A DNA stretch of 64,000 nt from Asterias rubens (GCF_902459465.1 NC_047074.1:12958001-13022000); one strand, 5' to 3'; positions 343 to 64,000 are shown, numbered from the stretch's first letter. The notes: generated by a model from the sequence alone, not told the origin. A program made the numbers and translations.

Positions 343-3300
343 GTAAGTTTAACTGGAAACAAAATGAAAATATAAAAGTTACTCCTATTGTTATGACCCT
401 TCCATGTTTTTTTTAATCAAACAAACCACAAAAATCCTCTATAAACATGTTTGATATAAAAAGACCCTAAAGGTCTAATGATTCAACACACATTATCAAG
501 GCTGTAATAGTTGTTTAATCAATTTGCAAGTCGGATAAATATTTATTTGGTTTTCCATTAATTAGAAACTTGTGAGCGACAAGCCGTGTGTTCTTCCCGA
601 GTCTATGACCAACGATGCTTTAAGGATTGAGCTTCAACAGAGAGGTCTGAGCTCACAAGGAGAGAGGAAGATGCTCCTCAAGCGATACAAAGAACCCGAA
701 GACCGTAAATGTTTATGACTTTCAAATTGAACAGAAGTGATAACAGGACACTTATATCCTTTGAGCGGAAGAGAACATGGACCTTGGGGCTGGGATATAT
801 CCGTCTGTTATCACCCTAACTAACATTTGATCTTCATTTTTGTTTTTTTATTTTTTTGTTTTACAAGACTTATACATATTTGTTTTTAAATGCACCAGAC
901 CCTATACACAATACACCAAATAAACAAGAACTTTTAGTTTTTCTTTAAAACATTTTGTTTATAATTGAGATGAATTCAAAACAGTGTGAACCGTGAAAAA
1001 AAGGAGTAATTTTTGTACCGCCGAGTTATGGCTTGATACTATCTTAAGTGGTTAGCGTGCACAATAGAACAATCCTTAATTATGTGTTTAAGTGAAACAA
1101 CACTCTTTTTTCACCCCGCCACAGGTTGTCCTCTACTTCAGGTCTCCCTACCTAAGAATGTATACTGTAAGATTGATGAGAGCTGCCTGGGTGTAGAATG
1201 TTGTATGAACATTAAACTCTTCATGGTGTCTCTGGCTTTCAAGGCATTCATGAGATTTGATCCCAGTGAGTTTCAGTTCATCATTGGTGTCAACTCGTGG
1301 AACTACACTGTTCAAATCCTGACGGCAGAGTGGGGTAAGTGGGAGTAATGGACCTGTTATATGCACGTGACGTCATTTTAAAAGTGCGTCCTCGTCAGGA
1401 TTCGGCTGAAGCCCTGAGCACTAACGCGAAACACACACGCAATTGTCAAAGTGTTGTGTTGAAAGAAATCATTTAACAATATTACAGTTTTTGCATTTAT
1501 TTTACTTTTTGACCCAAAGTGTTGATGTTTTTTTTTTTACCGAAAAGGTATTTATGAATGGGAATCAAAGTGTGTTGAATCGGTTTTCAACCAGTGGTTT
1601 TAACCCGCCGAGGCCTGGTTCCTGATAATTTACCTCGACTTCGTCTCGGTAAAATTATCAAGAACCAGGCCTCGTTGGGATTAAACCACTAGTTGAAAAT
1701 CTCTTCACAACACATTGATTCCCTTATTAATATTAAGCTTGTGAACTTTGACAAAGCTTCGACTTGATAACGTAGCTTTGAAATTGCTAACAGCTCTTTC
1801 TAAAAGTGTGACTGCATTTTCTGCAGGTACCAAGTCTCACCATAGAACAGTGTTAATTTTGTATTTGGTGATTATTCAGGGAAACAATGGGAGGTTCCAG
1901 TCCCCTTTGATGTACCTTTTGTTGATGACATGAAACTTCATCTTAGGTAAGTATTTCTCGTAAAGTTAAATATGGTAAATGATTCAGCATAATAATAAAA
2001 GCTGTGTTAAACTTAAAGGAGCACGTTGCCTTGGATCGGTCGAGTTGGTCTTTGAAAAGCGTTTGTAACCGTTTGTTATAAAATGCATATGATTAGAAAG
2101 ATATTTTAAAAAGGACAATATAATGATCCACACAAGTATCACTCGAAATTGCGTGGTTTTCCTTTTACCTCGTCGACTAATACGGTCGGCCATTTATGGG
2201 AGTCAAATTTTGAATGGCCGACCTTGTTAGTTCGCAAAGTTAAAGGAAAACCACGCAATTCCGAGGCAAATTTGTGTGGAACTTTCTACTTTTAAATCAC
2301 CTTTCTAACCATATGCATTTTACAAACGGTTACAAACGCTTTTCAAAGACCAACTCGACCGATTCAATGCAACGTGTTCCTTTAAGCTATTTTTGATTGT
2401 ACTGACTGTAAGTGACGTGGCCTTGCCTCTAAAATCTCGTATGTTTTGCACCAGAAACGAGTTTTGCACACTATACATGAATAGCAATTTTTCATTGTAA
2501 TCAATTGAAGGTTCAGCGTTGAAAAGACAAGAACTCAACTTCTTGTCAGCATGAGCGTGGGTTTCTGCCCTGAGAGTGGGGACGCAGAGTGCCTGGAATT
2601 CCTCGATGTGCTTCAAGATTCCGCTGTACCACTTCCCATCTACAACCCTGATGGCACATTCACTTGGCCAGAAAGTAGGTCACATTAAATCATGATTCTA
2701 ATACACTCTCGAACGTTTGTCTCAGTGGTGTAAAGCATTTATGAAACTGTTGCTGTTTGAACGAAACAATAGGCCTAGTTGTGAGATACATTTCGTAAAA
2801 TAGTATGAATTGAACCCATAGGAGAGATGCAAGCTTTCTTAAACTCATCTCACATCTCTTCAAGACGATATCCCCTTTCTCAAGGGTTGACTTTCAGTAA
2901 GTCGAGAAAATTTACTCTCAAATGAAACATAGTTGCAGGATATTTTCGAAAATAGTATTGTATCTCGTCCGGAAGATACCACTTTTCCCAATTTCCCTAA
3001 GTAGTTTTCTATTACGCTTTATCTTCTCCAACTCGCCATCGATTTCCGTATTCAGTAATACTGGGACGCGTTGACTTGGGTCGGGTGAGCTGGTCTATGA
3101 AAAGCGTTTGGAAACATTTGTAAAATGCAAATGGATATAAAGTTGTTTTAAAAGTAGAATATAACGATCCACACAAATATGCCTCGAAAATGCACAGCTT
3201 CTTTATGCGTTGTGATCTAACACGGCACGCAAATGTGTAGTATAGAGTCCACACTTTTACACTTCACAAAATGGCCAACCGTGTAGTACGCGAAGTGTCT

Positions 3301-6300
3301 ATTTAACGTGTCCCTTTAACTATTGATAAAACAGAACTGCTGAAGCTGTTTGTTTCTGTAATCCTCTTTTAGTTGACGTCGAGGAGTATTTCAGCCGTGG
3401 CAAGTTGAAGAAGTTTGTCAAAAAAACTGGAGAGGAGTTTCTTCGGGCAGGAACAGATGCAGCGATTGATTATGTTCTGAGAGAGATTGGCTTGGACAGA
3501 GTATGTTTTGTACTGCTTTCATATGTCTTCATAAATTCCTTGTGTTATGGGTTCAGATGTTTTTACCACCCTCAACCCTGCCAATGAAATTTTCTGCTTA
3601 TTTGGGGCAAGAGAATAGTAGAACCTTCATGCATAATCATCATCATCCTTCGTCCTTGGACGGAATAGTAGAATCAGATTTGATGAAGTGGTGTCAGGTT
3701 GCTTTGTCCCTCATTAGTTGTTGGGTCTCGTTTGGACTGAGATTTGTGTATTTGGTGATGGTTCTGTGTAGCTCATTTTCCTCCTGCCGCAGTTTGGATG
3801 TCCGCCAACATTACAGGAACACTTGTGCTTGGTTTTGCCAAATTTGAATAATAGGAAACCTGTGCATCTTTCTTTTCCCCGTTTGTTAAAACAGAAACTT
3901 CTGGATGGAAAAGAACCTCGTCCAACACCAGCCAGTTTGAGCGACCCTCAGCTCATCGGTGCACTTGAAGGCAGGAATCTGAAAACAACAGGAAGTAGAG
4001 CTGAGAAAGAAAATAGGCTCTCTCGGGATGAACGTAGTAAGTTTGAAAAAGATGCAACCTTTCACAAGAGGGTTAATCACTTTTGTTGGTAACAGGTCTT
4101 CATGGGAGAAATTAAAGTTAGGTCAGATGTTTTTTTTTTTTTTTTTTTTTTTTGGGGGGTATACATTTTAACATATTTTTCTCCACGCAGGTTGTGAAAC
4201 ATTTACTCTACCAGCATTCTCCGGAAAGGTCGCCGAGATTGCCTACTGCTCAATCAGTGAGAACTGCCTCCGTATTGACTGCTGTCTAGAACTGAACATC
4301 AAAGTTTTAAAGTTCAAGTTCAGCCGCTCCTTCGAAGCATTCATTGACGTCAATGCGTGTGATTTCTCGATTACAATTGCCTTTCAGCATTTGCGGTACA
4401 CCAAGTTGCTGTTGAGTTACGATTGGGGTGAGTGTTTATAAAAAGTACTGAGTAAAGTAGCTTTAGAGAAAATGTTTAGATTTGGATCAAGTGCAGCCAT
4501 TTTTTCTTTATCAAGAAGATCATCACTGAAGGATGGAACACATTGTTGTGTAACTTGCTCGGTGGCCGGACACAGTCATTGTTATATTAGCTAAAATGAC
4601 AGCAGAGGCAAACAAAAAGAGGTACCAATAGGCCGAGCCATCAGAAGAACTAAATTTTCAAAGTGTAACATTGGTATAATTTGGGTAAGCAATGTTGTTA
4701 TAAAGGATTTGAGGCATTGCATGGTGAGGTATCAATATTTGGTTTGCGGTAACACCATGCGTGTATCTACTTGCCAGGTAGAGTTTGTTCTTAGTCTTTC
4801 TTTAGTCAACTACCGCGGAGTAGATTTATCGGACGTTCGGGAGACTTCTCAGTTCTTGCTCTAGCTTGCTGTAGTCATCGTCAGGTGACTAAAGCTAGCT
4901 AGTCGAAACGTTGAGACCAATTCAGAAACTGACTCAGTGACAGTGCATGTAATTACAATCCTTTAAAGATGCTATGTCAGATTTTTGGCCGATTTGACCC
5001 CAAAATGTTGATTTTAAATTCAAAAGGTATTTTGTTGGGGGTCGAGAAAGTTACAAGCTTTCATTTGAGCGATTGCTCGAAAAAGTCCGCCAATCATTAG
5101 TGAAATAAAGTGCTCAAAATTAGTTTTTGTCGAGATCCCGACAATATATCACATGACCAATTCTTATGTGTTTTATAAGAAACGTTGTAAATTTGTTTCA
5201 TGGTTCCTGACCATTAAAAGTTAAAGGTTAAACTTGTTTCGTAAGAGCGGGTGATACTCTTTGAAATACCATTCACTCAAAAAAAAAACCCTGTTTTTTT
5301 ATAGTTTGGGGCCAAAACTCTGACATAGCATCTTTAACCTAAAGTAGTAGAGAGAATTGATATAAGTACATACAGGGGCATTGCTTGGTAACATACAGCA
5401 CAGGATAGATTGAGATGGAGAAGTGATAAAGAGGCTTTCCTCCTGCAGTGGAGTGAAACAGAATAGACGATGAGTAGTCCCAGCCAATTTTGTATTCCTT
5501 CCGCCCGGGTACTAGTCACAAAGCAGGACAGTTCGTTTGAGAAGCCTCCCGAACATCTGATAAATCTACTCCGCGTTTTCTTTTTTAATATAATAAAGAA
5601 AAACAGTTCGCTAGGAACACACTCTACCTGGCAAGTAGATACACATTTAGGGTGCTACCGCAAAACCAAAAATTAATATACAATGATATTGTGTTTTCTT
5701 TCAGGCGATGTGAAGCAACAGCAGATCGGACCATTTACACTGAGATACACAATCGATAAACTGGATGATGCAAAGCAGCTCAAGATTGACTTCGGAGCAT
5801 CGGTTTGCCCCATCAACGGGGAGGAGTGCATCTTTGACATTGACATCATTCAGGACTACAGAGTGCCGATTCCATTCTGCAACTCCGACTTTTCACTTTC
5901 TCTGCCAGGTATGCATATAACTTTAATTATGGCATTATTGGTAAGGGTTCCCTACTTAATAAAAGTTTAACATTGTACCATGAGTTAAGAACCGAGTTTT
6001 AGGCGAAACAATGAAACCGTAAAATCCTAATAAATAAGTACCTGCAAACAAAATTTGCTATAAATCTAAATTCAAACACAAAAAAACCTTATATAGAATT
6101 ACCAGACTAGTCAAAAGTGAGTTGAAATTAACAACTTTCATATTTGTTTCTTTTTTAATTGATATTGAGCCCAAAAAAATTTCTATCAGGTGCTTACAAT
6201 TGTTTTGATTTTGTGTTTGTTTTGATACGCAGGGAAGAATAGCCTGACTGATTTTATTACTCAAGTTGGTCGAAATGCCGGTCAGCAAGCCATCAACATT

Positions 6301-9300
6301 CTCCTACAGTTTATTGGTCTGAGAGATAAGATTGACGATGGACCCTGTGCCTCCACAACTCAGGATGGTATGAACAAACAATCAAGTTTTCCATTTAAGG
6401 GTGGTTTTAAACACAATGTGCCAATTTTCTACGTAAGTTCACGTATTAGTTATGTATTTGTTTCTTTGGTTTTCTCCTTTTTCAACATTTTGTTCACAGT
6501 TTCCTTTCTATAGTTGAAAAGAAAGTTTAATGGTTCCTGAGCTTATATCTGTGTTCATTGTAAACCTTGCATTTGCATTTACGAATATTTTCAGTATTGC
6601 AACTTGCAATACAACTTATAAATGAATCAAAAAAGTACTTCTTAAATATTATTAGAATTATTTTTTTATAAAATAAAAACATAACGAAAAAATATATAAC
6701 ATAAACAAATAAATACTTTGTTTTGAACCAGTCTCATTCAATACTCGTTATTTTTTCAGTGTGCACTGACGTAACTCTCCCTCGTCTTCCAAGCACATTG
6801 ACCTGTGACCTTTACGATCGCTGCCTCGGTGTGCGATGCTGTGTTGATCTGGATCTTCAAATCACTGTGTTATCAAGTAATGTATGGCTGGAACTTGATC
6901 CATGCGAGTTTTCACTATCCATGGGATTTGGAAAGTGGTCCATAACCTTCAAGATATTCGACTACCACTGGGGTGAGTATTTTGTAGCTAGTCATTATTA
7001 TCAACAGATCAGTACAGGGGTTCTCTTCAGGGGGTTTATGCAAAGTTGAGTTGGGTGCATACAGATGCAAGTTTTGGCAAGGTTTAATTAAAGAGAAACC
7101 ACTCAGAGAAATAATATCAAGTGAACAATACATGACTGACAATTAGAGAGAAAATAACATTGTTGGTAATTTGACCTTGGTATTGCAACTATTTGTATTA
7201 AGACGTGGTTTCTCTATGATACAAATTGACTCAAATAATGCCATTTCGAAACTAAGATGAATGGATAAACAAAGTATATCATTCGTTTATTATTGTTATC
7301 AGGCACCCAAGAGGAGCTAAAGATCGGCAAGGCCTTGACCCTGATTTACACCATCAACAAATTGACCGAAGACAAGGTGTTTGTGTTGGACCTGGCTCTG
7401 TCTCTTTGTCTTCCCGATTCGAGTTGTGATATAGCGCCCTCTATTGACATCTTGAAAGGAACGCGTGTACCTATTCCGTTATGCAATGAGAACGCAACAT
7501 TCGCCCTTCCAGGTATGCAAATAAAGAGATGAATAGGTTTTTTAAGCTTAACTGTGAAATTGTTCCGCCCCAACTTGAGCTGCAGTCTCTACATAATTGG
7601 GATATCCCTCAGACTTCAGACCAATCAAAATAAACCCAGCTACGGTAGCTTTTAGTCACTGCATTTATCCAATGATTTCATTGTATCCAATGGATTCACT
7701 GGATCTGAGGTTCAGGCACCTGCCTTTATCCTTGCGGTTAAAGACAGGGGCCCAGTATACATAAGGGTATGATTCAGCTAGTGAGGATCAACCTAAGATA
7801 TGGTAAACTGGTTCTTCAAACTTGGAATCTCTGTTAAGAAAATCTTAACACTTTGTGTTAATATTGATAATACATGTATTGTAGTTTATGCAAAAATAGA
7901 AGACAAAAAACACTTCAGTAAAAGATTAAACAACAGGCTCGTTAAAATGGAAATGTTGTCCATTTTTGTTTTACCATCACTAGGTCGTTTCGCACTATGA
8001 TCACGAGGGTCTACATACTAGATGTGACTCAGAATGTTTCATCATCCTTAGCAAAGACAATTTTTATATCTTCATAGGATATGAAGACACCGGACACTAC
8101 TGGTTTTTGTCAAAGACTAGTCTCCATAGTTGCTGTATCTCAACATAGGCATAAAATAACAAACCTGTGAAAATTTGAGTTCAGTTGATCGTCGAAGTTG
8201 CAAGATATTAATGAAAGAAAAAACACCCTTGTCGCACCATGGTCACACGAAGTTGTGTGCATTCAGATACTTTATGATTTCAAGACCTCAAATTCTAAAT
8301 CTAAGGTCTCGAAATCAAATTCGTGAAAAATTACTTCTTTCTCGAAAACTACGTAACTTCAGAGCGAGCTGTTTCTCACAATGTTTTATACTATCAACCT
8401 CTCCCCATTACTCGTAATCAAGAAAGATTTTATGGTAATAATTAATTTGAGTAATTACCAATAGTGTCCTCTGACTTTAAAGACACTGGAAACTGTTAGT
8501 AACCCTTCAAAATAGTTGTTCGCTCTATAAAAGTTTGTTCTGGGTTTAATGATGCATATATCAAATGTAAACAGGTGATGGGACTGTGTCAGACTTCGTG
8601 AAGATGATGGGACAGAATGTAGCCGAGTCGGGTATCGATGCTGTGCTCACCGCTCTTGGCCTGTCAGTAAGTAAACCAGACTAAATGGTACAAGGAGACA
8701 ATTTCCGTAGAAAAAATTTAATACCTTGTTATTTCAATTCATTTTCAATTCAATTCAATTCAATTCATTAAGGTTTATTAAAAAAAATCACAAAATACAC
8801 GACAGAAGTTAAAAAGACTTAAATTGGCGTGTTTACATTCATTACTGTCAACAATGACAATAAACAAAAAAAAAACTGACTTAAAAGAAGAGAAGAAACG
8901 CTCCAGGCATGAATGCACAAAAAAGATAAAAATTGGACTAAACTTGGTAAACATTCGATAAAACTGATAATTCATTATTATTAAAAATTACACAAGACAA
9001 CAAACTCTGACTTAACAAGGAGAAGAAACTGAAGGCATGAATGCACAAATTTAAAAAATTTGATCAAATTTGATAAACATTTGATAAAACTTAACCCAAC
9101 TGTTAGAGATACTTGTTGATCAAGCCACAAATTGTGTAACTTTCAATTCAATTAGAATAATTTTAGTGTCAAGTAAAAAGACAACAAGAACAATTATTTA
9201 CATATCTAAACATTGATGGAAGCTCCAAAACAGCTAAGAAAAAAACCCAGTTAAAATGGTAGAAATAGATTTACACCAACAATTTCACAGCGAGAAAAAC

Positions 9301-12300
9301 AAATATGTAATGAGTATTTTAAAATAACCGTCACAAATAAATAAAGGCCTTCAAACTTTATAACAATCTAAACAAACTGAAGTTCAACCAAACCAAACCA
9401 GCAAAGACAGTTTAACCATTTAACTGACATATTACTCCGCCCATATCGCTGCATTGACCCCATTTCCATTGATTAGAACAAACAATTTAAATCTTATTGG
9501 AATGCAGAGTAAGCTCATACATCTCGTTTTCACGTACTATTTATTTGTAGAAGTTCATTGGTCAGGAGCCATGTGTTCGCCCGCAGGTCACACAGAATGG
9601 ATGGCATAAAGGTAGGTTTGTGGAAAGTGAAAAGAGTCACCTTTAACGTTGATTTAAGATTCAAGTAAAATGGAAGCAAATTTTCTTAATTTTACACATG
9701 GTTTTGTTCACAAGTTGTAGATTTGGGATATCATCTACTAAACCTCATTACATTTCTGCAGTTTGTCCTAGAGATGTCAGACTTCCACATTTACCAAGAC
9801 ACCTCATCTGCACTCTTCCAGAGAAGTGCATGGGGTTCGATTGCTGTTTCGAGCTTCCAATTCCTGGACTGACCCCAATCAGCACCAATGTCTCCTTCAT
9901 ATTTGATCCTTGTAACTATAAGTTGTCACTCTGTCTGGGAAGCTGGAGTAAAGACCTACACATCCTCTCCTATCAGTGGGGTCAACAAGAAGAGGTCACC
10001 ATTGGCAAGGCAGTGTCTTTCAGGTAATCAGTGTAGAAATAACGAAAGATATTTAAATGTTTCAGATATTAGTTTTTATTTGCTTACAATCAAACGTTAA
10101 TTTGGTCCAATTTCCTCACAGTCTAACCATTGACAAGGTCGAGGAATCCTTCCAGATCAACTTGGATATGACCTTCTGCCTGGACGGTGACTGCACTCCA
10201 ATCCCGATCCTCAGTGATGCCATCATCCCCATACCATTCTGTAATCCCAATGCCACCTTTGAGCTTCCTGGTGATGGAAGCTTTGCTGCACTAGCAAAGG
10301 ACCTCGGAGGCAACGTCGGCGAGTTGGCGATCCAGGCTGGTCTACGTAAACTTGGAATTCAGGTTGGTGAATTAAATCAATGGACAGTGCTAACACAGTA
10401 CTTTCCCAAGCTCTGTCAAAAACGAATCACAGGCATATTACTTTGGTGGGATTGAAACCTAAGTCAATTTGTGTTTTGGTTGGACGTGGTGTCCGCATTT
10501 TGTTTTGGGGACGACGGTAGTCCTCAATACTATTGGTAATTGTCAAAGACTAGCCTTCACAGTTAGTGTATCTCAACATATACATAACATAACAAACCTG
10601 TGAAAATTTGAGCTCAATCGGTCATCGAGATTGCGAGATAATAATGAAATAAAAAAACACCCTGTCACAAAAAGTTGTGTGCGTTTAGATGGTTGATTTC
10701 GAGACCTCAAGTTCTAAATCTTTGGTCTCAAAATCAAGTTCGTGGAAAATTACTTCTTTCTCGAAAACTATGGCACTTCAGAGGGAGCCGTTTTTCACAA
10801 TGTATTGTACTATCAACCTCTCCCCATTACTCGTCACCAAGAAAGGTTTTATGCTAATAATTATTTTGAGTAACTACCAATAGTGGCCACTGCCTTTAAG
10901 CTGTGGCATAAATCAAGCTTAGTTTGTTATGTTTAGGCTATAATGTGTCCGAGTATAACGCATTTTATCGAAAAAGCGATGAAATTCTTTATACTCGGCA
11001 TATTACTCCCTGTTGGTGTTAGCTCGCATGAGTCACGGGGAGACTTGTTATCCAGTCTAGGTTTTTCCCTATTAACACGATGCCATGTCGTGTGTGTGGT
11101 ATTATGTATGGTAGTGTTGGGTATTCAGCAACCAATGGGAGCGTTGCTTATATAAGTTTGTGTTGGTTTGGTTTACATGGTTGACTTATTAGGATTGGTG
11201 TTGCAATTGAGTGGCTGAACGTTTGGCGGGAGCATAATTATTGTCACTTTGTCACAGCTCAATTTTGGAGTAACCGAGATTGCCTGGTAGCTAGGGGTAA
11301 TTCGAATTCTATATTTAGCAGCGGGTACCGCAACTTAACTAAACTCAAAACTTATCTTAAGCAGCTTACCAAATTGTTTTGAAATTGTCATCAAGTTCGT
11401 CAATTTGTGGAACTGTTTAATCTTCAGGAATTTGCCATTAATCAGCAGTGTGACCTGACGATACTTGCTCGCGCCGAAAACAGTAAGTTATTTTTCTTCT
11501 TGAGATTACAGGTTTCTAAGCGATCATTATAAACAATAACAGTACATGGGCTCTTTTCTTAAGTTTACTCCTTTTATATATTTCCCTCACAACTTAAATA
11601 TTAGGTATTATTTTAATAGGTGTTAAATTTGCATCGGGGATAGGCCCCAAAGAATGTTAATGTTGGTTTTACTCACCGATGTGTGCTAGCACTGCCGTCG
11701 ATTTCACAAAACTCTTCCTAACTTAAGACTATTTACAGGACTTAGGACGAGTCCCAACCCTGCACGGTAGCATGCAGACCTTAAGATTAATCCTAACTCG
11801 AGATAAGACGAGTCCTAACTCTTTGTGAACTCGACCCCTGTATACTTAGTACTTTCCCGAGTTCTTTGAACAAAAACACAGGCATAAACTCGGGTGTGAT
11901 TCGAACCGACGAGCTTTCATGGAGGTATTATTATATAAATAAAGCAATCTTACGTTTTTTCAACTACATCTGATATGTCTAATTCACTTTACTACAAGTT
12001 TATGTAGACACAAAATTTGTTTTCTTCTTAAATTAACAAGCCGTTCCGTCTTTCAACCCAATAGAATGCCCACTGATGAATAAACCACCTTCAACGAACA
12101 TACTGACCTGCACAGTAGACGACCAGTGTCTTGGTATCCATTGCTGCGCCTCCTTGGATCTTATCTTCACTCGACTATCTACCACAGCTTGGGCCGTTCT
12201 AGACCCTTGCGAATTCGAGCTGTCTGTTGGTTTTGGATCTTGGACTAAAAGCTTGACTCTCTTCGAATATGACTGGGGTGTGGAAAAAACAGTTGACATT

Positions 12301-15300
12301 AGTGATGCTGTTCATTTAGAGTAAGTCAAAACTGCCTAATTAGAGATATTTAGATTTCTCACCTCTCCAAATCGAGTTTTAAGAAAATTCGTCAAACCTA
12401 TGTGTTGTCAAACCCTTCGAAATAGTACCTGCAATTATGATGCGAAACTTTGAGCTGGAATAGCTTCCTCTGAAATTAATAACATTGGCTAGAAGATCAG
12501 CCATGCGGATGACTTTGAGTGCAGATCGTTTGCCAGAAACTAGAAATAAACGGACTGTCTAAAACGTGAGATATTGATCAAACTTTCAGAACTGGCTCTC
12601 ATACTTTGTCATTTTTTTTCTCGTATAAACCAGGTTCACAGTTGACAAGCTGACAGCGCAGAAAGAATTCCTGATCGACCTCTCGGTGTCCCTGTGCATA
12701 GATGGCACCTGCACACCGATCAACCTGTTACAGGGAGCCCATGTACCCATCCCGATCTGTAACACAAATGCTACCTTCTCCCTACCAGGCGACGGTTCAA
12801 TCGCTGGGTACCTGGACACTTTAGCAGGGGAAATAACTGATGTAGCTGTGGACTTGGTGCTTGACACTCTGGGGCTGAAGGTGACTTTAACCACTTTGTA
12901 CAATCATAACTTTGTAATGGGCCAAGAGACATTTATAATACAACAACAATACTAATCAGATTTCAATGCCAACATTCAAACTGTAGAGAAAACATACATT
13001 TATATTTAAATTATTTTCTTTTTATAGAATTTCATACAAACGGACTCATGTGGTCTTCCTCCAGCAACTAGTGATGACGGCAAGTGTTAATGTTTTTTTC
13101 TAAATAAATGACAAACTGTTGCATATTTATAAATCCCATAACTCGTCAGAACAAACTCTTAACCGCATTTTTGAAAGTACATTTTAACACTAAGTGTCAT
13201 CCTTACCAATAAAGCTACGTTCTATCTCCCGAAATCATTAGGTTGTCCAGTTCAGTTTCCCACTGGCCGACCCACAGTTTCCTGCCGTATAAACAGCCAT
13301 TGCACAAGTCTGCACTGCTGTCTCAATTTAGACCTCAAAGTAACCCAGCTCAGCTCTAAGGCTTGGCTGGATATCGACCCTTGTGACTTCAAACTATCAA
13401 TAGGAATGGGGATGTGGTACTTCAACATCTCACTGTTCTCGTATGAGTGGGGGAAGATGGAAAGATTCTCTATTGGACGAGCGATAAATGTGGAGTAAGT
13501 TTGTCAAAATAAGAGGAGTTTGATTATTAATTTTACCAACATCTGTCTTAGAAGCAGAAGCCTTAAAATTTGTTGAACACTAGCAATTGACAAGGAGGAT
13601 TTCCAAAATATAATGCATTTTGTTTTAAGAAATTGGTCAAACAGTGAAGAAAATTAGCCATTTGGTTTTCCACCTGTTTTTGTGACTTAAATGACAGCTT
13701 CACGGTAACGTTCAAAAACAAATTGTCGGGTGATTGGGTCGCAACAACTGTTTTTGTTTTTATAAGAACTGATGTTGGCCGTGTGCCTTAAAACAGTTTG
13801 CCTTTCTTTTTTTTCCTTTTAGAAACGAGGTTTGCTTAATGCTCACTCATTATTACTGAATATTCTCACTGAAATCAGATTTTCCATTGAAAAACTGGAT
13901 GCCTTAAAGGAGTACGAGATCGATCTTGCATTCTCTCTCCAAGTCGATGACGAGACTACGGACTTCCCCCTCATGGAGGCAAAGAGAATCCCTATTCCTA
14001 TCTGTAACAACAACTTCTCCTTGGCTCTACCTGGTGACGGGTCTGTACGGGGATTCTTAGAGGAGCTTGGAGACACTGTGGGACAGTCGGCAATTGATTT
14101 GGTTTTGAGAAAGTTGAATTTATATGTGAGTTAAAACAAACAAATTTGTTACAACTTTCACCATTGTATCAATTCGAACGTTCAGTAAGATGTTTTAAGT
14201 GATTTTACTCTTGATTTTGTTTTTGCTTTCAATTTGCAAATTTTTCCAGGATGTTGTAATTGGGGGATCGTGTGAAATACCATCAGAATCGGCAAACAAT
14301 GCACTAGGTAAAGTTTACTTATTAAGTATAACCAAAGTTAACTACCTTGGTTGAATTGACAAACAAGCACCAATACTATTTTGTTTAACTATTATTTGTT
14401 ATGCAACAAAGAACATTCAAAGACTACAAATAATATCACAATTTTTCATCACTCATCACTCGGTGTTTTCTGACTTTCTATCTCCTGTCCACGATTTCAG
14501 CTTGCCCAATGATCTCCCTCCCCACCTTGGCGAACATCATCCAGTGTTCAATCGATGACCACTGTCTTGGCATTCAGTGCTGTGTAAACTTGAACTTTAT
14601 CATCACCACACTCATGCTCCATGCTAGGATCAAAGTGGACCCATGTCACTTCCAGCTTCATGTGAACTTTGAAAGATGGGAACGTAACTTTACTCTGTTC
14701 AGTTACACTTGGGGAAAAGTGGAAAGGGAACCAATCGGTGATGTTGTGACTTTAAGGTGGGTAGGGACATTTTCATAATCTCTTTTAAATCAGATCACTG
14801 TTACAGTTGAATTAAAGAATGAACTAACAAGTAAATTTCAGTTCAGTTGATACTTTTTATGACATGTTGTCAATTTGTTTTGTAGCTATTCAGTTGATAA
14901 GCTAACGGAGAAGAAGGTATTTTCTGTTACACTTGATGTTGAACTGTGCATTGACAACGCATGCGTGACAACCTCCATCTTGGATCATGTCTGGGTCCCA
15001 ATACCCATCTGTAATATCAACGCTGTTACATTCACCCTGCCAGGTGATGGTACGGTAGCTGGATTTATCAAGGACCTCGGAGGTCGTATTGGAGATTCAG
15101 CAGTTGACTTAGTTCTGGAGAAATATGGATTGAATGTAAGAATACTTTTGCTTTCGTTCATCTCGGTCAAAGTTTCCTTTCCAAGACAGTTACTTCTCCA
15201 AAACCATGATCAAACATTGGGGAAGCAACAAACAAGAAAAGCCCCTCTCTAATATTCGATACAGCTCTGCTGTGCCCTGATCAAGCTACGGCCAGATGCA

Positions 15301-18300
15301 TGTCAAAGTCGTTCTCCATGTTTTGGGTTGAAAATCTATAAAATAAAAGCTGACACAAACATTCTAAATTAAAGAAGTTATCTTCTTGAATACCTCAACA
15401 ACAAAACAATTTAAAAGAGGCGCAACCTCCAAAAGGTGTGGCCTGCTAGCAGGAAATAAAAGCATTTACTGATAACAAATGAATTATTGTTTTAGCAATT
15501 TCTCCAGATTGAACAGTGCGAGAGAGGAACACCGTACACCTTAAAAAGCAGTAAGTGTTCTTCAATATTATACGTATGTTTAATTTCATAATGACTTTTA
15601 AACGTATATTTGGCTTGAAATAACACAATGCGTGTGTGTCTACTTGCCAGGTAAAGTTTGTTCTTTGGAGAACTGTCTTGATATATTCTTCTACGCTGAG
15701 TAGATTTTTTTCGTACTTTTTTTTTTCAGGAGAATTTTTAAAAGTTTTCAATTCGGTTATGAATAGTAAAATCTGTGCAATGCCATTACGCTTTCCTTCT
15801 GAAGGTTGTCCAGGGGTCGACCTCGAACAACTTCCTGATTTCCTCTCATGTTCCCTCACCGAGTCCTGTCTTGGCATTACATGCTGTCTGGAGATGGACT
15901 TTAAGATCGTGACACGTACAGTCAATGCATGGCTCATCTTGGATCCCTGCAACTTCAACCTGTCCATCGGCTTTGGGAACTGGGAGCAAAGTATCACCTT
16001 ATTCCACTATGCTATGGGTGACTACAGGGAGGAAGTTATTAACAGTGTGCTGAGTGTAAGGTAACTTTCACAAAACCTGTATACAATCAAACATGGTTGT
16101 AGACTCTATACTCGGGGAGGGGGATTTTGGACTGTATGGTCAACCCTTGAGTATAAATTGACCTTGGTTTCGAATACAAAAAAATGCTCTCAAAATCAAC
16201 TCCGTCTTCTATTAACAGTTTCGATTTATGTTTCTGCTTGTTTTCTGTTTGAGAAGAACATGTATATTTTCTACAAACACGTGTTTTTTTCTTTATCTTT
16301 AACAAAGGTGGCGTGTCGACAAGTTAACTGTAGAGAAGCAGTTTGAGTTGTATTTACAGCTGGTCTTCTGTTTGGATGGGTCATGTAACACTGTGACTGT
16401 GTTTGAGGGTAGCCGTATTCTGATACCGCTGTGTAACACTGAAGATTCATTTGTTCTTCCCGGTTAGTGTTTTTATTTAATCTGGTGTCAAAGTATAAAG
16501 AACACATTGGCTATAATAAACATAGTTTTACCGTACTACTTTTATCCATTTTGTATAATCTCCACTTGTTAATGTAAGCCTTAAAGGCAGTGGACACTAT
16601 TGGTAACTGTCAAAGACTAGCCTTCACAGTTGGTGTATCTCAACATAAGCATAAAATAACAAACATGTGAAAATTTGAGCTCAATCGGTCAACGAAGTTG
16701 CGAGTTAATAATGAAAGAAAAATAACCATTGTCACACGGAGATGTGTGTGTTTGGATGGTTGGTTTCGAGACCTCAAGTTCTAAACTTGAGGTCTCGAAA
16801 TCAAATTCGTGGAAATTTACTTCTTTCTCGAAAACTATGGCACCTCAGAGGGAGCCGTTTCTCACAATGTTTTATACCATCAACCTCTCGTCACCAAGAA
16901 AGGTTTTATGCCAATAATTATTATGAGTAATTACCAATAGTGTCCACTGCTTTTAAAGATCATGACAATTCAAGATATATTTCTCATGTCCTTTTTATTC
17001 AGGAGATGGCACAGTATCGGGATTTCTTGAATATCTTGGCGGCAATATCGGACAATTTGCTATCGATGCAGCAATCCGACACCTGAATCTAGGCAGCTTC
17101 CTATCAGGGAAGGCATGCTCTAATTACAGACAGGGTATGTTGAGGATTTATGTTAAAATAGAGTTGTATGAGAAATACTTTTAAAGGCACCGGGCACCTT
17201 TGGTAATTGTCAAAGACCAATCTCCTAACTTGGTGTATCTCAACATATGCATAAAATAACAAACCTGTGAAAAAATTTAACTCCATTGGTCGTCAGAGTT
17301 GCGAGAGAATAACGGGAAGACCACCCTTGTCGCACAAGCTGTGTGCTTTCAGATGCTTGATTTCGAAACCTCAACTGAGGTCTCAAATTCAGTTCAGATA
17401 ATTCTTTTAGTTGGAAATTCTTTTTTTATAAGAAACTAAGTTACTTCAGAGGGAGTCTTTTCTTACAATGTAGCATACTATTAACAGCTATCCATTACTC
17501 GTTACCGAATCTAACAATTGTTTTGAGTAATTTCCAATAGTGTCGGTGCCCTTTTAAATCAAAGTAACAGGTGATAATAATTGGTATCAATTAAGACACA
17601 ATTCCCTTTTTTTCAAAAACTAAGTCACAATGTATTTTACTTCCACGTTAATTTTTGTTATAACGATATAATGTGAAGGCATCATAATGATGTGGGAACT
17701 TTTGTTGAATGGAACACATGTTAGATATCCAGTGTTTTTGTAAATTTCCCTATGTGATATTCTCCCCCGAAAAGATGTTTGTTCAAGTGCAACTGGTATC
17801 CTTGGCGACTGCTCAATCGTTGGGGAATTCTGCACAGAGCTCAGATGTTGCCTCGACTTGGATCTGAAGATAGCTGATGTCTCGGCCTCAGCGTGGTTTA
17901 AGTTTGACCCCTGTGACCTCACCTTCACTTTAGGTCTGGAGACTTGGATGTTTCATGGATCGGTCTTTACATATGAGTGGGGTAAGACAATCAAATTATG
18001 ACCATACTTTCAGATTCTATGTTCAACTTTCCCTTTCCAAGCTCTAATGTTTCTAACCAATTACTCTCTGCGCCAACTCTCTTTTCAAAAGGTAGAATAT
18101 ATTACAATACATTGTGTTTTTATCTAATGATTTCGTTGTGTTAATAGGTGGAGAGACAATGGTTTCAATTGCTCCTGGATTGAATCTTAAGTAAGTGTTG
18201 AAAAACTCTCTCTGTTAAAAAGATGCAGTGCTTGAATTTAAAACATCCGTTAGACATTTATTCATGAAAAAAAATGCATGTAATAACCTTTCTTAAAGAT

Positions 18301-21300
18301 ATTTCTCAAAGATCACTCTGGTTGTACATTATGATCTTGTGTCTCTGAGCCAAAAAATACGGACAAACAAATAAGAAACAAACATTGTTTTGTTATTTTT
18401 TTTCAAGTGTTTCTCCAAATTTACATAACCATCTTAATCGCTTTTAATTTTCACAACTTACAGATATTCAATCACCAAACTCGATGAGTCCATGGAGTTG
18501 CAAGTAGACCTGACTCTAGAGTTCTGCGTCGATGAACTTTGTACCGACATCGATATTGTGCAGACCATACCTATCCCACTTTGCAATCAAGACTTCAGCA
18601 GTTATACATTCTCGGGTAAGTTTGTATTCAGTTCACTCAAAAGTCAATTCACAAAATGACAATGAAGTTCATAACAAAATATCTTAAATAGAGCATTTGA
18701 TTGATGTAGTGTAATGTTGTATAAAATGTATTAACCTTGCACTGTCAAACAACCATTCACCAACAAGCTGGAGTTGACGACCTCTGTTTTACTGGACACT
18801 ATTGTTAACAGTTAAAATAAAAACTTACCAAGAAACGAGCACGTGAGCTTGTTCAAATTAACACATTTTCAAGCCAAGCAAGCATTACTGACACTTTAAT
18901 ACAGCACTGTTTTTTTTTACACTTTACAGTTTACAGATTTATTTTCTTTATTCCCAGTTGATGGTTTCCTACAAACAGTGTCCGGACAAATCGTACAGGG
19001 AGTAACTGAGTTACTCTTAAATCAACTAGGCATCGACCCTGACTTCTTCAATGGTGATCCGTGTGTACAACCGAAGAGTATCCAGTCTTACCGAAGTAAT
19101 TTCTCATTGTAACTAACTTTGAAATTAGTTCTAACCAAAAGGACAATTATCAGATGTCCTTCATCTTATTGACAGTTCATGGGTTACTGTTAGGAAAATT
19201 GTAAATACCTTAATTTAGCCTGTATTTATAAAACTTTATCAGCAACGTTAAAAAATGCACGATACGAAAGTATAATCATGAGTAATTCCTGTTTCAGATT
19301 GTCCAAACATGCAGCTTCCTGGTAACCTCGACTCGAGTGTACAATGTGAAATCCTGGAGTCCTGTTTTGGAATAAAGTGCTGTCTTGACGTGAACCTCGG
19401 ACCACTCAATCACAGCTTCAGTGCCTCAATGGTGGTTGACCCTTGCCTTGGTCAGCTGAAGCTGCAGTTTGGTAACTGGAAGTACAGTAAATCACTGTCA
19501 CAGTTGGACATTGGTGTCGATAAGGAGGTCACCATCGGAAACTTTGTATCGCTCATGTAAGATTCTTTATTTTCTTCTTTGCAAAAAAAAGTTGTAAATC
19601 GTAATTTGCTTTTAATTTGTTAAAATCAAGTTATAGAACTTCAACAAATATCTTCATGCCTTTGAAGAAGGTCCGGTTTGTATCGAAAGCTAAGGCCATC
19701 TACCCTACTCATTATAATAAAGCCGCATGTATATATTGTTTTGCTTTATAGATTCAAGTTGGAACTTTTTGATGGTAATATATCATCAAGTCTGTATATG
19801 GATGTATGTGTGGGTGATGTCTGCACGGGTCGAATCGTTCTACTGGATGAATCAATATCTCCACTTCCTCAGTGCTATTCCAATGGATCGATCTCATGGA
19901 GAAAGTTACCGGGTAATTGTGTTCTTATAAAATAATCCCTTCTTCAACAGTGACAGTCAGACAGTATGATTAATAGAAATATTAACAGATGTTAAATTCG
20001 CATCTGGAATAAAGAACATTCACTGTGGTCAAAGCCATATACAACGATGTGTGTTAGCACCGTATACTCAGTACTCTACCGAGCTCTGTGCACAAAATAG
20101 CAGGCATTATCTTGCAATTTTAGAGCATTGTCATACCAACTAGACCACCGAGATTGCCTGGGCCCAAAAATTTGCTTAGCACCACAATTTCTTCCTTGAT
20201 AAAAACAGGATAACCAACCAAATTGTCGTTTGTTGCATATTGCTTGTTACATGTATTCAGCTGTTGTTTGCTTATCCTGAAAATCACGTGGAAATTTTGT
20301 TGGTAATTTTGTTTTTATCAAGGCAACAAATGTCATGCTAAGCAAATTTTTGTGCTAAGCAGCGCTATGAAATTGGGCCCTGGTAGCTATGAAGCAGTTC
20401 AATTCTATGTTTTAGTAGCGGGTTCTGCTGTAGAGATGTTTCTTCAATTCGATGCACGCCCCTAAAACATTATTTATTTTGTATATTTAAGAACTGACTT
20501 CGATTTCACAACTTGGCAATTTTGAAATTGGATTAGACGTTCTTGCGCAAGCTTTGGGACTGCCAACACGTCTACTATCGGATTTGTCATGTGTTGTCTT
20601 TCATACGAGTGGCTTCACAGGTAAGCTTCAAACAACTGTTATGCGATATTTTGGAGAGAAATTAGTTTAAAGGAACACGTTGCCTTGGATCGGACGAGTT
20701 GGTCTTTGAAAACCGTTTGTTATAAAATGCATACGATTAGAAAGATATTTTAAAAGTAGAATATAATGATACACACAAGTATCACTCGAAATTGCGTGGT
20801 TTTCCTTTTACCTCGTCGACTAACACGGTCGGCCATTTATGTGAGTCAAATATTTGACCCTCATAAATGCCCGACCGTGTTAGTTCGCAAAGTAAAAGGA
20901 AAACCGCGCAATTTCGAGGCAAATTTGTGTGGATCATTGTATTGTACTTTTAAAACATCTTTCTAACCATATGCATTTTATAACAAACGGTTACAAACAC
21001 TTTTCAAAGACCAACTCGACCGATCCAAGGCAACGTGTTCCTTTAATAATTATCTTTATTTTATTTATTAATTATTTTGATGTAATGCCACATAGGTTGG
21101 TCAATGTCTCGTTGTTGTTTATATAAAAATAGTTTAAGTATGTACGACTGTATCATAGAGTATACCACAAAAACCTCTTTATTTTGTTCAACCAAATTAT
21201 ATAAGCAGTGGACACTATTGGTAATAATAACTCAAAATATTTAAAAGCATAAAACCTTCCTTGATTACGAGTAACGGGAAGAGGTTAGGAGTATAAAACA

Positions 21301-24300
21301 TTGTGAGAGACGTCTGTGCGGCACCATAATGTAGCCCGAGCCCTAAAGGTTCGGGCTACATCTAGGTACAAGTTTGGGGCTACATTTAGGTCCGGGCTAC
21401 ATTTAGGTACATGTTTGGGGCTACATTTAGGTCCGGGCTAAATTTAGGTACAGGCTAAATTTAGGTACATGTACATAAACAAAAGAGTTATTTTCCAAAG
21501 ATTGATTTTAAAACATCAGATTTAGAATTTGAGTCTCGAAATCAAGCATCTGAAAACACACAACTACTTGTGACAAGGTTTTTTTTCTTTCGTTAATATC
21601 TCGCGACCGATTGAGCTAACATTTTCACAGGTTTGTTATTTTGTGCATATATTGAGATACACCAAGTGAGAAGACTGGTCTTTGACAATTACCAATAGTG
21701 TCCAGTGTCTTTAAGCTCCATGTAATAATATTATGATCGAGCACCCTTTTCCTGATTGCGATGGATTTGTGTATATATTAAACAGGTTGTTCACTGATTA
21801 TAAAAAATACTTGTTACTTCATCAGCACATACACAAATTTTGTGTAGATTGTTAGATGATTGTTATTTTGTATCACCCTTGTTTTTTCGTTCCAGTGTGT
21901 CCCCATCTGCCTGTACTACCCGTTCTTCCATCAGGTGGAGTTTGCCAGTATGCTGATACATGCCTTGGGGTAGAGTGTTGTTTATCAGCAGACATAGGCA
22001 GCACGACTCAGACTTTACGGGCGTGGTTGACTGTAGACCCATGTGAACTGACTGCGAGTGTAGGCTTTGAAAACTGGAGTTTCAATATTACACTCTTAAG
22101 GTGAAGTTTCTGCATAAAAGATGTCACTTTTATCCCTTTCGTCTTAAAAGGTTTACTCTAAACGAAGCTACACACCATGTACAATAATAATTATTTGCAA
22201 CGGCTGCTCACTTTTTATATCTCCTAGGAATAATCTCAAGTTAGGAGTAGTCCCAACTCTTTGTGAACTCCTTGTTTAATTGCTTTTCTTGTAGTTACAA
22301 GTGGGGCAAGCAGATCAGAGAATCACTAAGTGATGTTGTCTCGATTTCATTCACCATTGACAAGACATCAAACAATCGGAACTTTGTGCTGTCACTCTCT
22401 GTTAAATTCTGCATCGCTGAGTTATGTGCTCCTGACATTATCATCTTAGATGGCTTCGTGGCACCGATTCCTTTCTGTAATGCAACGGGGACTCTGGAGT
22501 GGCCTCAGGATCTTGGTGAGTTAAATATGTTCATTCGTCATTCCAAAACGGAAAACATTCTCGAAACTAAATCCGAAGGGATGCATTCATTTTCTTCTAC
22601 AAACACAAGTTAGTTTCTTCCGTATAAACAGACAAACTACAACGTTCGAAATTGTTTAAGCTAGAAAGATTACAATCAGGGTTGGTGATAACACTTTTAA
22701 TGGCAAAACATGAACTTGTTCATCTTTTGTGTTTCCAAGGTGGTAGTGTTACAGATTATGCGAGCAGTCTGGTGGTTAACCGCCTGGGTGTTAGCACAGA
22801 TGTCCTTCTACCTCAGTCATGTAGTGGTCCACCAGAACAGATTACATCTACGATCTCAGGTAAACAATTCCTGCGAAAGACAAACTTGTCACCTTTTTTT
22901 GAAGCTTAAAATGTGGCCCTTTTCTCAGTGATGTTCAAAACAGCCTAAAGCTTAGCATTTAGTCAAGGCACACGACCCCAAATGCCACGCAAAAAATAAC
23001 CGCACTAGTCTTGTTTTCGTGCGTGAGTGCCGCTGCCGCGTGCGCCTTGACTAATATAAAGGCTTCCTCAAGGTTTGCTTTGAAACCAATTTTCAAATAA
23101 ATAAGCCCAACCGATGATTGCTGTTTGTGTTTATCTCAGGTTGTGGTTCGCTCTCCGTTCCGTCCTCCATTGCGTCTTATTGTTCTCTGGATGAATCGTG
23201 TCTCGGGGTTGGTTGCTGCTTGACCCTTGACCTGGACATAGTTCAAAGGTCATTCTCAGTGTGGGTGAAACTCGATGTATGTGCCGGTAGATTCACCTTT
23301 GGTTTTGAGGAATGGAGTCACAGTGAAGTGTTAAACATAGCAACATTGCAAAGTAAGTCAATCTAAATGTCTTTTTATTGCACTCTCAAAAAGATAAATA
23401 CGAATAGTAAACTTGCAGGTACAACTATGTGTAAAATCTCTTTTGTAGGAGTGTTGGCTCTGAAAAAGCCGGTTTGGTCTCGACGTTTCGAACAGTATAC
23501 TCTGCTCGTCTTCGGGAGAAACAAAGTTTGTCCGATTATGGCTAGTAGATAACTCCTTTAGCAAACACAATATAATTAATCACGTTAACTTTATGTTATG
23601 CGGGAAAAAATGCCAAGATCAAAGAACAACAAATTAAACAGAAAAGAAAACAAGAAAGTGTCAATAATCTCCCCGAGTAGGCCTTTTGCAGAAATATTCT
23701 AACTTATTTTGTTTTTATTTGCTTTATTTGAAGCATATTCCCAGGAGAAAAATATCGGAAACGTTAAAATCAGGTAGGTGATATTTTCTCGAAATAAAAA
23801 GGACCGTAAATAAATCTAATTTTAATTTCACTGTTTTTTGTTTGTTTAAGAATAATAGGCCTACTACTATATATCGAAGTCACCAAACATTCTATTGCTT
23901 TTTGGTTGCTTTCTCTAGATATAATATAGAGCGCCCCCATGAGTCCGTCTATGATGTTGACCTTGACCTCGCTGTGTGCTGGCAAGGGAGATGCACTGAT
24001 CCCATTGTGGTTCTTCAAGACACGTTGTTCTCTGCTTCACAATGTGGCCAGGAAGGAAGCAGTAGCAGGAGGAGGAGAAGAAGTGTTGACGATCTGTACG
24101 TTCAAAATACCGTTTACCTGCTGCAGCTAGACGGACTGTACATTTGGAAACATTTTTGTTTTGTTGAGATGCAATATAGAGCGCCCCCATGAGTCCATCT
24201 GTGACGTTCAAAATATCTTTGTAATGGTTGTGGCTAAGTTTGTTGATTCGAGTATAAGGTTTTCAAGTATTACCGAGTTGCATATGTCGCTCAATTCTAA

Positions 24301-63212: not shown

Positions 63213-63592
63213 TTTAGGGAATGTACACGTTTGGTAATTGTCAAAGACCAGTCTTCTCACTTGGTGTATCCCAACATAAGCATAAAATAACAAGCCTGTG
63301 AAAATATGAGCTAAGTTGGTCATCGAAGTTGTGAGAAAATGACGAGAGAAAAACCACCCTTGCTGGACGAATTTGTGTGCTTTCAGATAGGAATAAAAGA
63401 CTTTTGGCTACTACAGAAGTATTTTATTATTTTAGTGAGAAATTACCCTTTTCTTAAAATCTATGCCACTTCAGAGGGAGCCGTGTCTCACCAAGTTTTA
63501 TACTGTCAACAGCTCTCCAATGCTCGCTACCAAGTCAGTTTTAAAGTTGATATTTGTTTTGAGTAATTACCAAACGTGTACCTTCCCTTTAA
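63213..63592 (+). mobile_element. MITE family A, diverged TIR subfamily
   Basis: agggaatgtacacgtttggtaatt..aattaccaaacgtgtaccttccct-ttaa; family A interior. Confidence 0.85.
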
Positions 63593-64000
63593 AACAGAGT
63601 AACTCGGAAAAGTGTTATATAATTTAACTGGCCCTAACAACCCTTTAAAATGATTTTTGGGGATTACAATCAAGTTAATGCAGAACAACAAAAGTCCGGA
63701 TGGTACCCTCATTTTATGTCCATATTGGTTGACTGTATGACTCAAAGATGAGAGAAAAATAAGCTATAGGATACAACATCGTACAACCATCTTAATTGTT
63801 GTGTACAATCCTTTTACTGTTGTGTTGATTTTAGCTTTAATATTATCATATACGTATTTGTATTTTTAGTCTTGTTATGTATGTCAGATGCTGAGGATCT
63901 CGACATATAGGGTGAGGTGCTGCTCTCACCTCCACTTTTTGTCCTGTTAATTACTTAACTAATTTTCGTTTGAGTTTATTTTGTTTCCTCCTTGATGGTT

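Follow-up and report, generated by a model that had tools for sequence, protein, structure and literature searches.

The window analyzed here is a stretch of 64,000 nucleotides of Asterias rubens DNA (GCF_902459465.1 NC_047074.1:12958001-13022000), with positions counted from its first nucleotide. Twelve tandem units of 181-192 aa each lie on its plus strand, at 1125-24095. The twelve repeats are a genuine, conserved and expressed protein domain without a curated family; in each copy (~185 aa) an all-beta core (nine strands, ~130 aa) is followed by a hairpin of two helices and by a short linker with a conserved Cys. The best joint explanation of the data, in which we place moderate confidence, is that the units form an array of DUF4773-like extracellular modules in a secreted protein with a Vitellogenin_N domain, where they would act as a stalk or multivalent platform. 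In public data this uncurated domain is present in at least 774 cluster representatives; it is under strong purifying selection and merits a family model.

The repeat array and its exon cassettes

The window DNA is AT-rich (GC 0.35-0.41) and its short open segments are separated by stops, and were therefore read as exons and introns. A hidden Markov model (HMM) was trained on a few obvious copies of the repeat and run against the six frames of the 64 kb. Part A was found in exactly 12 copies, all on the plus strand (starts at 1121, 4226, 6759, 9755, 12058, 13235, 14500, 15798, 17810, 19297, 21895 and 23142), and part B, with the same self-trained HMM, likewise in 12 plus-strand copies (2509, 5737, 7344, 10111, 12629, 13874, 14875, 16306, 18459, 19786, 22344 and 23911). 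All these matches fell between 1121 and 24045, and the six-frame profile gave no further copy of either part elsewhere in the window. The helical part C was detected in nine units (1-8 and 11); in unit 9 it was located at 18963-19079 by a family HMM match, and a predicted exon at 20492-20620 may be part C of unit 10.

A second alignment (A3) was assembled from 55 whole units cut from amphioxus and bivalve proteins, with no window sequence in it. Its HMM recovered all 12 part-A exons of the window (expectation value, E, from 2e-14 to 7e-25) and matched the spliced products of seven window units at 128-175 bits (E 1e-41 to 6e-55, HMM positions 2-197), a recovery far beyond chance. The original prediction, made from the sequence alone, had claimed twelve tandem copies of a cysteine-rich domain, and both searches found them. 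Its consensus was reproduced by alignments A1 and A2 (motifs C..C.I...CLG..CC, DPC, Y.WG, Y.IDKL, C.DG.C, PIP.CN and LPGDG), and of the ends it had given, 1125 is a predicted phase-1 acceptor and 24095 a predicted donor. The units and the two SAP-like motifs beside them are as follows.

SAP-like motif 1: 566-715, plus strand; Cys-bounded loop just before unit 1, outside the repeat and given for context.
Unit 1: 1125-3500, plus strand; from HMM matches and splice scan, A exon 1125-1334, predicted mini-exon 1901-1946, part B ~2517-2674, helical part ~3395-3500.
SAP-like motif 2: about 3886-4032, plus strand; Cys-bounded loop between units 1 and 2, given for context.
Unit 2: 4191-6367, plus strand; exons 4191-4427, 5705-5908 and 6233-6367 (576 nt), phase-compatible junctions; spliced product 131 bits against the family HMM (E 1.3e-41).
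Unit 3: 6760-9611, plus strand; exons 6760-6972, 7303-7512 and 8575-8666, linker 9551-9611 (576 nt); spliced product 175 bits (E 6e-55).
Unit 4: 9762-11482, plus strand; exons 9762-10023 and 10122-10362, linker 11428-11482 (558 nt); spliced product 139 bits.
Unit 5: 12065-13070, plus strand; exons 12065-12320 and 12634-12880, candidate linker mini-exon 13028-13070 of uncertain position.
Unit 6: 13242-14307, plus strand; exons 13242-13494 and 13879-14125, linker 14250-14307; spliced product 139 bits.
Unit 7: 14501-15550, plus strand; exons 14501-14756 and 14886-15135, linker 15496-15550; spliced product 159 bits.
Unit 8: 15805-17134, plus strand; exons 15805-16060, 16308-16462 and 17003-17134; spliced product 128 bits.
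Unit 9: 17775-19095, plus strand; from HMM matches and junctions, predicted exons 17775-17981, 18148-18190, ~18464-18615 and 18958-19095.
Unit 10: 19298-20620, plus strand; exons 19298-19556 and 19752-19912, candidate helical/linker exon 20492-20620; the most divergent of the twelve.
Unit 11: 21896-22859, plus strand; exons 21896-22100, 22295-22515 and 22740-22859 (546 nt); spliced product 129 bits.
Unit 12: 23140-24095, plus strand; from HMM matches, part A 23140-~23352 and part B ~23851-24095, internal junction ambiguous; truncated, without the helical hairpin and ending in a polybasic RRRRRS stretch.

In units 1, 9, 10 and 12 the exons are only predicted, as is the linker exon of unit 5.

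Each unit comprised 3-5 exons, as originally stated, and all 12 unit-start exons (the first coordinate of each unit above, from 1125 to 23140) were preceded by a phase-1 intron. The seven unambiguously spliced units measured 543-576 nt, in every case a multiple of three, and had phase-1 introns at both flanks. Such phase-1 cassettes are the hallmark of an exon-shuffled extracellular module that was multiplied by tandem duplication of the cassette. Within the cassettes, parts B and C share one exon in units 4-7, the linker being a mini-exon of ~55 nt; in units 2, 3, 8, 9 and 11 the B exon stops inside the Gly codon of 'LPG' and the hairpin is on a separate exon. The intron between parts A and B was found at three different positions and phases: after 'WG' in phase 1 (units 2 and 3), ~12 codons later in phase 2 (units 4, 5, 7, 8 and 10) and at an earlier position in phase 2 (unit 11). 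These shifts suggest that introns slid, or were gained or lost, once the cassettes had been duplicated.

Spliced contigs from RNA-labelled runs joined the predicted exons directly. Contigs of X3 and X4 ran through units 5 and 6 (12065-12311 to 12634-12880, ~44 unplaced nt, then 13240-13494). The segment 13240-13494 was joined directly to 13879-14126, followed by ~51 unplaced nt, 14498-14754 and 14884-15135; X1 record 5 joined 14528-14754 to 14884-15135 and, after 55 nt, to 15805. In unit 8, 15805-16058 was joined to 16306-16461. The longest contig cited (X3 record 13) was 10 kb. The window exons were also compared with locus L001 of the sea star Patiria miniata, at 70-82% nucleotide identity (82% between unit 1 and L001 7947-8132). 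Over 579 codons the proportions of synonymous and nonsynonymous differences (pS and pN) were 0.65 and 0.12, with a ratio of nonsynonymous to synonymous rates (dN/dS) of ~0.09. The units are under strong purifying selection.

Ten conserved Cys columns were counted in 126 full units (family HMM positions 2, 17, 23, 28, 29, 48, 106, 113, 130 and 181). The recurrence of cysteines that had been predicted was thus confirmed, and the number, given as 8-9, was corrected to ten with the linker Cys. Co-loss of cysteines across the 126 units was strong for positions 17/28 (phi 0.94), 106/113 (phi 1.00) and 48/130 (phi 0.86) and weaker for 23/29 (phi 0.44, with few losses). Four intradomain disulfides would accordingly join 17-28, 23-29, 48-130 and 106-113, and a further bond probably connects Cys 181 of the linker to Cys 2 in the unit that follows. 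These last two cysteines bracket the loop between units, and the first two such loops hold a SAP-like insertion. Paired loss was also seen in the window: unit 1 has neither cysteine of DPC and PIP.C (with DPS and PLPIY in their places), and unit 6 lacks both in C.DG.C. The paired pattern argues for an oxidising, extracellular environment.

A profile of the 12 part-A pieces was searched against 1.84 billion proteins, a check proposed with the original prediction, and matched 774 cluster representatives at E <= 1e-3. Many of these proteins hold 3-14 copies, and the named matches were all 'hypothetical' or 'uncharacterized'. Tandem arrays were present in Branchiostoma (amphioxus) and in the bivalves Potamilus, Sinanodonta, Mytilus and Mya, and a 400-aa model from Patiria contained one full unit and parts of neighbouring units. 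Parts A and B alternate in the homologues with a period of 185-205 residues. As judged from these sequences, the array architecture is conserved across three phyla (echinoderms, cephalochordates and bivalves). One-to-one orthology of units with amphioxus was not seen beyond the units next to the SAP motifs.

Predicted fold and its resemblance to DUF4773

No consistent match to the 24,736 Pfam-A models emerged from 8 window pieces, the 12 part-A pieces, the 55 full units or the whole homologues. Scattered matches to single members, such as Benyvirus_P25 and Triabin, were discarded as noise. A confident match to a described Pfam family, which would have contradicted the original prediction, was therefore absent from all the material scanned. 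A profile search of all PDB sequences gave no match, and protein searches with unit alignments A3 and A4 returned nothing, or short fragments of the same repeat family.

Structures were predicted with AlphaFold2 for one amphioxus unit and one sea-star unit core, and not for window units. The amphioxus unit, modelled with A3, reached a mean predicted local distance difference test score (pLDDT) of 84.7 and a predicted template modelling score (pTM) of 0.70; its nine strands had pLDDT above 90. The second model, which covers the beta core of the Patiria unit orthologous to window unit 2, had the same nine strands (pLDDT 84.4, pTM 0.73). The strands followed by a helical hairpin in the predicted architecture agree with what had been read from the sequence.

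Three kinds of evidence relate the beta core to DUF4773 (PF15998), an uncharacterised family found mainly in arthropods, of which the literature searched held only three incidental mentions. Among language-model features, DUF4773 clusters were the only recurrent named family, with scores of 0.78 for a window part-A piece and 0.83 for the amphioxus core; they made up 12 of the 100 nearest clusters in each search, which is a lead only. In a Foldseek search of the AlphaFold DB clusters, members of the repeat family ranked first and were followed by four representatives annotated 'DUF4773 domain-containing' (snail, spider, bee and tardigrade; E 4e-4 to 5e-3, probability 1.00). In a shape search of the ESM Atlas with the Patiria core model, a cluster with 100% PF15998 members was matched with a template modelling score (TM) of 0.59 by query, the highest among the matches listed, over 114 of 144 residues at a root-mean-square deviation (rmsd) of 3.2. 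Both sides of each of these structure comparisons are predictions. On this evidence the beta core quite probably has a DUF4773-like fold and is probably homologous to that family.

Given this likeness, the 'candidate new domain' of the original prediction is better worded as a new family of a DUF4773-like fold. The repeat is a separate new family, outside current models, whose fold is probably known but uncharacterised. If so, giant secreted proteins of molluscs and deuterostome invertebrates become linked to an orphan arthropod family, which widens the range of the fold and offers a setting for its study.

Other structure searches were negative. Against the PDB, Foldseek gave no match at E <= 1e-3 with either model; rows for Pur-alpha, Whirly, CapZ and sliding clamps were rejected as meander-sheet noise (rmsd 10-20). 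Nothing significant was found in the Swiss-Prot AlphaFold DB, where the best row was a plant Pur-alpha (E 7.6e-3, TM 0.24). A TULIP/BPI-like or other lipid-binding fold, proposed as a check together with AlphaFold and Foldseek, was matched by neither model: BPI, CETP, SMP and Takeout were absent from the top 50 of Foldseek PDB and VIA-align searches with either model, and no TULIP/BPI-like fold appeared in the Swiss-Prot AlphaFold DB search. Structures of lipovitellin, MTP and apoB were absent from all top lists of both models. Lipocalin and fatty acid-binding protein (FABP) barrels matched at noise level only (TM 0.2-0.3, E > 0.01), so the suggestion that sheet and helices might cradle a hydrophobic ligand found no structural support.

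The host protein and the proposed role of the array

The layout of the host protein was pieced together from partial gene models, the longest single ones being of 5183 and 6862 aa. In amphioxus and bivalve homologues it reads signal peptide, Vitellogenin_N, SAP-like motif and then 9-17 units. In the amphioxus RefSeq model P0157, an N-terminus resembling a signal peptide is followed by Vitellogenin_N (44.3 bits, cut-off 24, profile positions 77-551 of 590), a SAP motif and twelve units; in P0003 from Potamilus, a signal peptide and Vitellogenin_N (37.2 bits, same cut-off) precede nine units. A region resembling M23 peptidases precedes the array in P0011 and P0154. SAP motifs were found in P0001, P0008, P0011, P0154 and P0157, and two SAP-like stretches flank the first unit in P0157 and P0154. 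Homologues also carry a PAN/Apple domain, and in the longer models P0001 and P0151, as in the window, PAN and many fn3/Ig-like modules follow downstream.

In the window, SAP-like motif 1 passed the Pfam gathering score (E 1.2e-6, 28.5 bits, cut-off 23.9) and was colinear with the SAP motif of P0157 (1289-1335). SAP-like motif 2 matched the bivalve P0154 (681-729) by tblastn at 43% identity, and in Patiria P0058 a SAP-like motif likewise precedes a unit. The location is odd for a motif known from nuclear DNA-binding proteins. Upstream of motif 1, an exon at 176-349 was conserved with Patiria L001 6556-6729 and weakly matched, over 187-330, the pre-SAP part of P0157 (1237-1283); Patiria L001 also has exons homologous to P0157 1002-1173 upstream of its first SAP motif. 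From the pre-SAP1 exon, the window begins inside the gene. By sequence colinearity the array starts with unit 1; the presence of further units upstream of the window was rejected, since the order SAP1, unit 1, SAP2, unit 2 is colinear with P0157 and P0154, in which the stretch ahead of SAP1 does not form a canonical unit.

The window gene was colinear with amphioxus P0001 to 51.2 kb and with bivalve P0151 to at least 60.9 kb. Its second half (27681-60927) corresponds to P0001 3036-5173 and P0151 3464-6360 and contains dozens of W.GF.D.ESGI..Y modules, which are divergent fn3/Ig-like by Pfam and Atlas. From just before SAP1 onward, the gene in the window most likely encodes a giant secreted protein of the large lipid transfer protein (LLTP) superfamily; secretion is deduced from the homologues. 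Literature searches on the homologues' gene identifiers and on a described LLTP of this kind found nothing. The undescribed protein offers a testable lead for research on lipid transport, yolk, clotting and matrix in marine invertebrates.

Directly after unit 12 the translation at ~24061-24095 is polybasic (SSSRRRRRSVDD). A second polybasic site, PSRKRRDLS, lies at about 26780, ~2.7 kb beyond SSSRRRRRSVDD. Both are candidate proprotein-convertase sites between the halves of the protein.

Nearly all conserved positions of the unit alignments are Cys, Gly, Pro, Trp/Tyr or alternating hydrophobics, and nothing among them indicates a catalytic or specific binding site; a scaffold or multivalent platform was therefore preferred. 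The array would be a disulfide-locked, protease-resistant stalk or a multivalent binding platform. As a string of rigid beads it would keep apart the lipid-transfer module at the N-terminus and the adhesive half at the C-terminus, and furin-type cleavage at the polybasic RRRRRS directly after unit 12 may free the N-terminal half.

Several results weigh against the proposal of DUF4773-like modules in a secreted Vitellogenin_N protein. The PF15998 model had no match on the 55 homologous units (E <= 1), the 12 window part-A pieces (E <= 10), the 8 window pieces (E <= 1) or the whole homologues (E <= 0.01), and no gathering-score membership was obtained. The full-length amphioxus model brought no DUF4773 row in the ESM Atlas, and the two-helix hairpin of that model had a pLDDT of only 63-68. 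The case for homology with DUF4773 is thus confined to predicted structures and language-model features. The signal peptide and Vitellogenin_N would lie upstream of the window, as judged from homologues of other phyla and partial colinearity with Patiria. The RNA contigs were ~5-8% different from the window and therefore come from divergent alleles or from related species; the splicing they document is that of the orthologous gene and not of this exact allele.

The strongest rival is fold convergence, in which the repeat is an independent new all-beta family and its likeness to DUF4773 reflects a common arrangement of meander sheets. It draws on the missing sequence-level signal to PF15998, on the low TM by query in Foldseek with the full-length model (0.38-0.43) and on the failure of the first Atlas shape search to return DUF4773. 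Against it, three methods, two query units and two structure libraries arrive at DUF4773 among thousands of families, and the core-only model aligns over most of its length at the TM given above (114/144 residues, 0.59). We consider convergence rather unlikely.

Alternatively, the units could be modules for lipid or hydrophobic ligands that enlarge the carrying surface of a large lipid transfer protein, with the hairpin over an amphipathic sheet, loosely as in the beta-belt of apoB and apolipophorin. Lipid binding gains contextual plausibility from the position of the array immediately downstream of Vitellogenin_N in amphioxus and bivalve homologues; the strands are long (10-12 residues) and meandering in the models, a polybasic cleavage site follows the array, and lipocalins, FABP, odorant-binding proteins and a START protein occur in the weak top lists. 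These points are outweighed by the absence of any TULIP/BPI, lipovitellin, MTP or apoB structure from the top lists, by the five disulfides of each unit and its confidently modelled, self-contained core (pTM 0.73 for the model lacking the hairpin), which suggest a rigid module and not a lipid-wrapping belt, and by the PAN and fn3/Ig-like remainder of the protein, typical of adhesion and matrix proteins. Lipid-carrying units are improbable.

A bolder combination makes the array the cargo-binding extension of an unrecognised LLTP branch: a scaffold of 12-17 disulfide-locked DUF4773-like modules would replace the amphipathic sheets of vitellogenin and apoB and would stay tethered to the PAN/fn3 half until furin cleavage. 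We regard it as a long shot; if true, it would be the first functional assignment for DUF4773. An actinoporin-, fungal lectin- or class-II-fusion-like beta sandwich that binds glycans or membranes is very improbable, no binding motif being recognisable among the conserved residues (Cys, Gly, Pro and aromatic core positions). The idea of a non-functional gene, of decaying duplicated open reading frames or repeat-element debris, has in its favour a very high-copy repeat in the introns and the units (1, 6 and 12) that lack some Cys or the hairpin, and is refuted, its probability being negligible, by the spliced RNA contigs (one of 10 kb), the seven spliced units intact and in frame and the dN/dS of 0.09, with cysteines lost in pairs, as expected of disulfide partners, and an architecture kept across three phyla.

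Other features of the window and comparison with known systems

The very high-copy intronic repeat lies at 16524-17045, and similar pieces were found at ~8160-8414, 10648-10854, 25344-25628, 28020-28251, 31694-31840, 49966-50158 and 63315-63624. Its summed contig depth in RNA-labelled runs was 10^5-10^6, compared with 10-100 on exons, and its translated copies have CAFRWLISRPQVLNLRSRNQIRGKLLLSRKLWHFRGSRFSQCF in common. It looks like an element of the short interspersed (SINE) or miniature inverted-repeat transposable element (MITE) type scattered through the introns of the gene. A 27-bp tandem repeat (55815-56079; 9.8 copies, 98% matches) lies inside an open segment of 225 codons and would encode (TTADEAADM)n; it could be coding, as a linker rich in Thr, Ala and Asp, or else a minisatellite within an intron. 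TGC/TGT-rich simple repeats, which translate as poly-Cys, adjoin a run of 141 N (57916-58052 and 58053-58193).

The systems nearest to the proposed stalk or platform differ from it in definable ways. With the large lipid transfer proteins (vitellogenin, apolipophorin II/I, apoB and MTP) the homologues share a signal peptide and an above-threshold Vitellogenin_N. Furin-type cleavage is known for vitellogenin and apolipophorin, and the polybasic site after the array may be likened to this processing. Of the families typical of large lipid transfer proteins, however, Pfam gave only Vitellogenin_N in the homologues scanned; SAP-like motifs, the repeat array, PAN and many fn3/Ig-like modules come instead.

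EGF, fn3, Ig and CUB modules resemble the units in being symmetrical phase-1 cassettes, disulfide-rich and tandem, in a secreted multidomain host. The units differ from them in fold and sequence, have 3-5 exons each and vary in their internal intron positions. The N- and C-terminal domains of FAIM (PDB 3mx7 and 2kw1) have, unlike the units, neither a helical hairpin nor a tandem array; FAIM is cytosolic and without the disulfides of these units.

DUF4773 is the closest known family by predicted fold, with the same all-beta core; the units have diverged too far for its Pfam model to recognise them. The repeat core differs in carrying the helical hairpin and the Cys-closed linker after it, and in its setting: in echinoderms, cephalochordates and bivalves it is strung together in 9-17 tandem copies within giant proteins, whereas the DUF4773 matches are proteins of 175-468 aa.

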